DNA of 64,000 nt from Octopus bimaculoides. Its lineage: Eukaryota. Every line of letters begins with the position of its first letter. Within the stretch, counting starts at the first letter, position 1. A program made the position numbers and the translations under genes. The DNA is taken from positions 32,941,423 to 33,005,422 of the forward strand of contig NC_068982.1 in NCBI RefSeq assembly GCF_001194135.2, given 5' to 3'. This document shows, one piece after another, positions 22,126 through 22,763 of the stretch. Below the pieces are notes generated by a model, which was given only the letters and a program-made list of their open reading frames with translations, did no database searches and was not told where the DNA came from.

Positions 22126-22763
22126 ACATATATACAAACACACATTACAGATGAATGCGTGCTCACACATAACTAAACATGCACGCGCGCACACATATTC
22201 ACGCACGCGCACTTGAATCGTGTTTCTGCGAACACACTCCACAGTTTCCAGCTTAGGCTTATGCAAAATGAGCTGCCTGTCTCAATGCACCAAAATACAC
22301 ATACTGTAACTAACGGACAAATATTTGATGAGAGCTGTCAGATATCAGTTGATTGATGACAAAATATACAAAATCTGGCAATTTTCAAAAAATAATCGAT
22401 AAGGATCTTGTTTTTTGCTTGTTTATCCATTGGGGTTGGGTTCACGTATTATGTATATGGTTTTGATGTAAAATATAAATAGAAAAGTAATGCTGTGACG
22501 TATTGTGTACAACGTCTTTTAAAAATCAAAACTAATTCCACGGAATATGTATTGTTTGTACAAGCGATTTGTCCGTTAGTTACAGTGTGTGTATTTTGGT
22601 GCATTGAGACAGGCAGATCATTTTGCATAAGCCTAAGCTGGAAACTGTGGAGTGTGTTCGCAGAAACACGATTCAAGTGCGCGTGCGTGAATATGTGTGC
22701 GCGCGTGCATGTTTAGTTATGCGTGAGCACGCATTCATCTGTAATGTGTGTTTGTATATATGT
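22126..22763. repeat. Long inverted repeat: 197-bp arms (22126-22322 and 22567-22763) with a 244-bp spacer
   Basis: Arms differ at 3 positions by manual comparison; opposite-strand ORFs 22003..22266 and 22623..22853 share MHKPKLETVECVRRNTIQVRVREYVCARACLVM. Confidence 0.95.

Follow-up and report, generated by a model that had tools for sequence, protein, structure and literature searches.

A young, near-perfect inverted repeat in noncoding Octopus bimaculoides DNA and the tentative case for its origin by template switching

Two near-identical stretches of DNA that face each other across a short spacer raise three questions: whether both arms exist in the genome, how the second arm arose, and whether the structure has any effect on the organism. 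Here we address these questions for one inverted repeat (IR) in a 64-kb stretch of the Octopus bimaculoides genome, which we refer to in full as the window—a gapped scaffold segment with 14 N runs, about 36% GC and a high density of microsatellites. The reading we prefer, to which we assign a probability of about 45%, is that the IR is a real, single-locus, recent and probably neutral inverted duplication of noncoding sequence, produced by a template switch during replication.

A repeat search of the window places the arms at 22123-22322 and 22567-22766; each is 200 nt long, the two are 98% complementary, and 244 nt lie between them, for a whole unit of 644 bp. The original prediction described a 197-bp inverted repeat with three mismatches and a 244-bp spacer, and base-by-base comparison bears this out: the core (22126-22322 and 22567-22763) is 197 nt long with exactly three mismatches, at 22167/22722, 22272/22617 and 22302/22587, which on a plus-strand RNA are A:C, G:A and U:G, respectively, all as predicted. 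A fourth mismatch (22125/22764) sets the core apart from a matching terminal CA/TG (22123-4 and 22765-6), and the longest run that is identical from arm to arm measures 104 nt. The ends of the IR are sharp—at all four, identity drops from 98% to random within one base—and when 490 nt and 650 nt of flanking sequence were aligned locally with gaps allowed, the repeat extended on neither side. We considered a 9-of-10 match between the outer flanks (TGCATGAATT and TGCATGTATT, offset by 10 nt) as a possible extension; it is too weak to count. A chance origin can be dismissed because the minimum free energy of the predicted RNA fold lies far outside that of shuffled sequence (z about -47): the 691-nt IR region folds at -434 kcal/mol on the plus strand and -411 kcal/mol on the minus strand, against about -183 and -158 kcal/mol, respectively, after shuffling.

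Each arm is made of two different kinds of sequence. The outer ~90 nt are an impure CA/CG/TA microsatellite opening with ACATATATAC; on the left they include three degenerate units of ~25 nt (22139-22215, mirrored at about 22674-22750), each of which opens with CACACAT, so that direct sub-repeats recur at a spacing of 22-26 nt. In the same outer part of the left arm, purines and pyrimidines alternate as CG/CA over 22 nt (22177-22198) and over 13 nt. Alternating runs of a comparable kind, with CpG, are present at 19 other places in the window, and we therefore regard the outer arm as background-type sequence. The inner ~110 nt (22213-22322, mirrored at 22567-22676) are complex sequence, and the left arm as a whole has a GC content of 0.435 and a CpG observed/expected ratio of 1.15. 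The spacer, which would form the hairpin loop (22323-22566), consists of 244 nt of complex, AT-rich sequence (GC 0.30) with trivial internal repeats only.

The boundaries of these parts deserve a closer description. At the inner end, a perfect 10-nt palindrome, CAAAT|ATTTG (22318-22327), is centred exactly on the boundary between left arm and spacer; because of this palindrome, ATTTG stands both at 22323-22327 and at 22567-22571, and the two copies bracket the remaining 239 nt of the spacer. A 5-mer direct match at that spacing is found at 0.28% of window positions, and 10-nt palindromes other than (TA)n at 0.18%; as a sign of anything meaningful, the coincidence is suggestive only. At the outer ends, the arms pass into microsatellite-like sequence (ACATATATAC on one side, GTATATATGT(GTGTG) on the other), in agreement with the original prediction. 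The outer edge of the left arm is spanned by a small hairpin, TATGTCTG / CAGACATA (22107-22114 and 22123-22130, with an 8-nt loop), which may have arisen by chance in TG/CA-rich sequence or may have guided a strand switch.

Comparison of the window with itself shows how isolated the IR is. At 98% identity it is the only non-microsatellite repeat above 92% in 64 kb and, on this measure of sequence divergence, by far the youngest repeat of the window. Further copies of the spacer or of the inner 110 nt of the arm are absent from the window, and the best other match of the outer ~90 nt (31778-31858) is a low-complexity one at 71%. The arms had been predicted to be non-SINE sequence that matches no other repeat in the window, and this holds, the outer ~90 nt giving only weak, low-complexity matches. 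The surrounding repeats are of several kinds. The most abundant is a SINE-like family of ~200-220 bp, with at least 13 copies at 70-82% identity: 147-300, 2165-2308, 4568-4783, 6418-6647, 8837-9056, 10824-10988, 11073-11357, 23474-23677 (the copy nearest to the IR), 47759-47982, 47993-48198, 48622-48843, 60773-60999 and 63319-63543. One inverted pair of this family (48027-48211 and 48624-48808, 71% identity, 412-nt spacer) would form dsRNA too, but is older and weaker than the IR. Members of two other interspersed families are found around 5605-6045, 20642-20826, 35902-36127, 41357-41765, 54678-54874 and 57172-57560. A pair of mariner-like copies on opposite strands (3458-4233 and 14566-15331) shares 92% identity at a distance of about 10 kb, and a minus-strand reading frame at 14981-15481 matches the Pfam domains Transposase_1 and HTH_48, the Mos1 helix-turn-helix; one copy is cut by the gap at 2621-3457, and the other adjoins the gap at 14333-14565. 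Fragments of a non-LTR retrotransposon (LINE) are recognized on the plus strand by the Pfam domains Exo_endo_phos (29812-30441) and RVT_1 (30791-31213), and two minus-strand reading frames (27773-29228) lie near them.

Two other features were observed in the surroundings of the IR. Imperfect palindromes with no spacer occur at 20968-21149 (72% self-complementary, 184 nt), about 1 kb to the left of the IR, and at 2306-2544 (68%, 239-267 nt); both may represent structures broadly like the IR that are older and have decayed. In addition, a 32-nt direct repeat (21651-21682 and 22842-22873, identical at 30 of 32 positions, TCTGGGAGTTGATTTTTTTTT[C/T]CTGTA[A/C]GAAA) brackets both the nearest gap and the IR at a spacing of 1191 nt. 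This match is far above chance for the window (0.04 expected for its 19-nt core). We considered it as the edge of a larger duplication and rejected this, as there is no extended homology and the score without the core falls in the range of shuffled sequence; the direct repeat could be a piece of some repeat that went unrecognised, or could have been left behind by the rearrangement that made the IR.

Signals of coding or known RNA function are absent from the neighbourhood. Pfam searches of the reading frames of arms, spacer and flanks, and of all frames of at least 45 aa across about 18.4-24.7 kb on both strands, returned no match, and we consequently treat the locus as noncoding; likewise, neither the spacer nor the sequence out to about 3.5 kb from the IR yielded an exon or protein domain. 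Across the whole window neither tRNAs (ARAGORN) nor Rfam families at gathering score were found. At a permissive E-value, Rfam gave only sub-threshold matches to CA/TG-repeat miRNAs over 21853-23400, the best being mir-297 (25.5 bits, where the gathering score is 90).

How could such a structure arise? In a template-switch scenario, a nascent strand would leave its template during replication or break repair, copy the neighbouring ~200 bp as the reverse complement, and then go back to the template. The outcome would be the order flank-arm-spacer-arm'-flank, which the four-point template-switch model designates 3-2-1-4 or, in mirror image, 1-4-3-2. Events of this class account for 31% of high-confidence human-chimpanzee events and create a new inverted repeat (PMC5453318); template switching is also documented to create RNA hairpins (PMC8794818), and a related route, shown experimentally, is foldback priming from hairpins that form at short inverted sequences (PMC7467729). 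What is found at the octopus locus has the same form—a second copy nearby in reverse complement, sharp ends, and flanks unrelated to each other. The two switches could plausibly have been guided by sequence at the edges of the arms: on the outside the microsatellite ACATATAT/ATATATGT, which is self-complementary, and on the inside the short palindrome CAAAT|ATTTG. The resemblance of the arms to background DNA, by way of their microsatellite-type outer part, would also favour a local duplication. Against a template switch stands the scale of the event, since a fragment of ~200 nt at an offset of 244 nt is at or beyond the long end of the published short events, which involve tens of bases; at the switch points, no microhomology is demonstrable beyond sequence that already belongs to the arms. 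The original prediction of a very recent inverted duplication by template switching is thus upheld for its youth and for a layout that fits the model; the mechanism itself we infer, tentatively, from that layout. Two independent insertions of a young repeat were also considered and rejected: neither arm has a duplication or tail of its own (only ATT/ATT at the left), and there are no other copies.

Several other explanations must be weighed. The second arm could be an artefact of a short-read draft, created by mis-resolved graph paths, gap closing or chimeric reads in a genome that truly has one arm. The original prediction had raised the worry of misassembly because of a gap about 270 bp away; the distance is correct (a 99-N gap, 21754-21852, ends 270 bp left of 22123), but the gap is not suspicious. 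A (TA)n tract borders it on either side, and of the window's 14 gaps, which include 20301-20641, 35373-35849 and 51401-51494, 11 adjoin microsatellites—(TA)n, (GT)n, (AC)n, (GAG)n/(AG)n or (TC)n/(TAA)n. Gaps in this scaffold mark unspanned simple repeats, and the one beside the IR is therefore put down to an ordinary (TA)n tract that was not spanned, a cause unrelated to the IR. The artefact reading gains some credit from the heavily gapped state of the scaffold, from the 104-nt identical stretch, which is long enough to confuse a k-mer graph, and from one clear gap-edge artefact in the window: an 80-nt direct duplication at 100% identity (55628-55707 and 55866-55945) around the gap 55708-55865, which looks like an unmerged contig overlap. 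Nevertheless, all four junctions of the IR lie in one uninterrupted contig of 2.8 kb (21853-24670), and the arms differ at three internal sites, so that they must have been assembled separately rather than derived from a single consensus. The 244-nt spacer and the flanks are unique sequences that bear no relation to one another, which together with the sharp ends disfavours both a haplotype mis-join and a snap-back chimera with zero spacer. The window contains no other inverted duplication of this kind, and none of its gaps has an inverted duplicate across it. On balance, an artefact is improbable. An inverted haplotig is ruled out, given that the flanks are unrelated. If both arms are real they could still be old, kept near-identical by recurrent intrachromosomal gene conversion, a history that would look the same as a recent duplication in the one genome compared; the 1.5% divergence between the arms would then say nothing about the age of the IR. 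Closely spaced inverted repeats are known substrates of arm-to-arm conversion. Biased conversion could also yield the composition of the arms, which are richer in GC (0.44, versus 0.30-0.31 in the spacer and left flank) and in CpG (observed/expected 1.15-1.26, versus 0.17 in the left flank). The GC and CpG excess, however, lies in the outer ~90 nt, which are microsatellite-like and have a CpG ratio of 1.73; at 0.65, the inner 110 nt are below the window average of 0.83, and arm composition is thus explained by sequence type. An old repeat should also have frayed edges of lower identity, whereas those of the IR are not frayed, and we give long-term conversion small odds.

A more serious contender, though still an unlikely one, is a non-autonomous DNA transposon—a miniature element (MITE) of Tc1/mariner type with long terminal inverted repeats (TIRs), or a foldback-like element—inserted at a TA within a palindromic (CA)n(TA)n(TG)n microsatellite. 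With a total length of 644 bp, ~200-bp arms and a short core that codes for nothing, the IR resembles a long-TIR deletion derivative in both size and shape. The presence of terminal inverted repeats as such does not discriminate between the readings, as any 200-nt arms supply them trivially; target-site duplications (TSDs) are more informative. Outside the arms, a systematic scan for duplications of 2-11 nt found none, whether the boundaries were set symmetrically or asymmetrically. This lack speaks against superfamilies with duplications of 3 bp or more; in particular, the types that leave 8-9 bp (hAT, P, Mutator and foldback) are disfavoured because their TSD should persist at an arm divergence of 1.5%, yet none is present. 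The original prediction that the IR has no TSD is therefore right for the sequence outside the arms but weaker than it was put, since the TATATA within both arm ends can hide a TA duplication. Indeed, the boundaries 22131-22135 and 22754-22758 allow TA, TATA or TATATA to be taken for a flanking duplication, which there is indistinguishable from arm sequence because TATATA is self-complementary, and a Tc1/mariner-type MITE would still be a candidate. The empty site implied by such an insertion, CAGACATATA|TATATGTGTG, would be a palindromic compound microsatellite, which is an ordinary target in a window that holds ten of them; a hidden TA duplication in a palindromic target would also account for the way the repeat seems to run into microsatellite. 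The window does contain remnants of mariner-like transposases, and the degenerate ~25-nt sub-repeats of the outer arm recall the arms of foldback elements. Still, no second copy, even a diverged one, is found in about 60 kb that hold at least 13 copies of one SINE-like family; the arms do not resemble the window's mariner copies; and the outer arm is microsatellite of background type. The termini (CAG/CAC ACATATATAC...) match no transposon terminus that we can name. Palindromic Harbinger repeats of ~200 bp are a major source of dsRNA in the frog, and to that extent give the transposon reading a precedent (PMC5625713). Look-ups in collections have little bearing on the matter: an exact 26-mer of the inner arm had no match in metagenome, prokaryotic-genome and viral collections, which are not expected to hold this genome; the products of four arm-junction reading frames are not on record as exact entries, which carries no weight, as two long transposon frames of the window are likewise absent; and two arm/junction frames gave no protein homologues in a search that had no power, as a control frame from the SINE-like family of at least 13 copies gave none either.

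We return, then, to a recent inverted duplication by template switching, and to the question of what it might do. The locus is most likely selectively neutral, as far as we can infer. At the level of DNA, a hairpin or cruciform would be possible, and the 244-bp spacer should keep any such effect modest. At the level of RNA, the IR could act only from within a transcript, where it is modelled to form a duplex of ~200 bp with three imperfections; the original prediction of such a duplex agrees with the predicted fold on both strands. In a mollusc, the expected fate of this duplex, if transcribed, would be hyper-editing by ADAR and unwinding, rather than dicing to siRNAs. Long, near-perfect dsRNA is the main substrate of ADAR hyper-editing across animals, and hyper-editing is exceptionally high in O. 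bimaculoides (PMC5625713). In the same study, 4.4 x 10^-3 (0.44%) of random 50-mers from this species had a reverse partner at more than 95% identity within 2 kb, an exceptionally high value, although the count was made without a low-complexity filter and palindromic (TA)n tracts may form much of it (PMC5625713). The IR falls within the genomic definition used there (more than 95% identity over at least 40 nt within 2 kb); by a similar measure 0.81% of the non-N bases of the window qualify, and the IR contributes 400 of the 485 qualifying bases.

The proposed role as a substrate for endo-siRNAs fares less well. In a survey that covered 32 molluscs, O. bimaculoides among them, neither a Dicer nor an Argonaute dedicated to siRNAs was found, nor were small-RNA pairs of Dicer type (PMC12479628). 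As surveys find no siRNA pathway in molluscs, endo-siRNAs from the IR are not to be expected. Back-splicing has no support, and no exon is detectable in the spacer. We consider it very unlikely that the IR is a functional hairpin-RNA gene, be it as a source of small RNAs, as a ligand for dsRNA sensors or ADAR, or as a means of circularising the spacer. Such a gene would have the benefit of an extremely stable predicted duplex on either strand and of Z-prone alternating CG/CA tracts in the arms. One of the three imperfections on each strand is an A:C mismatch, a context favoured by ADAR. Set against these points are the lack of a match to any Rfam family (mir-297 being sub-threshold), the lack of an exon or domain in the spacer or within about 3.5 kb, the lack of any sign of a target gene as the source of the arms (in protein searches of little power), and the lack of a dedicated endo-siRNA pathway in molluscs (PMC12479628). 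Finally, a bolder version of the idea would have the IR as a newly born, lineage-specific structured-RNA gene, whose 200-bp duplex, Z-prone in its outer third, might be read by a mollusc ADAR1-type enzyme with Z-alpha and dsRNA-binding domains or might feed new small-RNA hairpins. We regard this as extremely improbable; if true, it would be a case of template switching caught in the act of creating a functional RNA.

It is useful to compare the IR with systems in which long inverted repeats have been described. Neighbouring inverted pairs edited by ADAR, known from primate Alu elements and across Metazoa including O. bimaculoides (PMC5625713), resemble the IR in being near-identical reverse segments of ~200 nt within 2 kb that are predicted to form a long duplex. 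In contrast to these pairs, the arms of the IR do not come from an interspersed family seen in the window, and their identity is 98% compared with about 71-82% for the SINE pairs of the window. Inverted repeats made by template switching (PMC5453318; for hairpins, PMC8794818) share with the IR their layout, dissimilar flanks, sharp ends and self-complementary junctions; however, the fragment of about 200 nt and the offset of 244 nt contrast with described events of mostly tens of bases. Foldback elements and long-TIR MITEs, such as the ~200-bp Harbinger palindromes of Xenopus (PMC5625713) and the Mutator and foldback elements of PMC3169594, are similarly short, non-coding units that consist almost entirely of inverted arms with outer sub-repeats. 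Unlike them, the IR lacks a second copy in the window, an unambiguous TSD and recognisable termini, and its outer arm is like background microsatellite. The hairpin-RNA (hpRNA) loci of Drosophila are likewise long inverted repeats, able to form duplexes a few hundred base pairs in length; these loci, however, are transcribed, correspond to a target gene and are processed by a Dicer/Argonaute pair dedicated to siRNAs, whereas molluscs appear to be without this pathway (PMC12479628).

Taken by itself, the IR matters little—it is another long, near-perfect inverted repeat, of a kind already described, in a type of genome reported to be unusually rich in them. Its modest value lies in being a clean and datable inverted duplication of ~200 bp that is not derived from a SINE, and as such it could show whether template switching operates at this length in cephalopods. 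The IR is also a test case for the quality of short-read draft assemblies around inverted repeats. Should it prove to be intronic, it would be a candidate hotspot of hyper-editing; should it prove to be multicopy, it would represent a new long-TIR or foldback-like family, and would help explain the high dsRNA potential and heavy hyper-editing in octopus.
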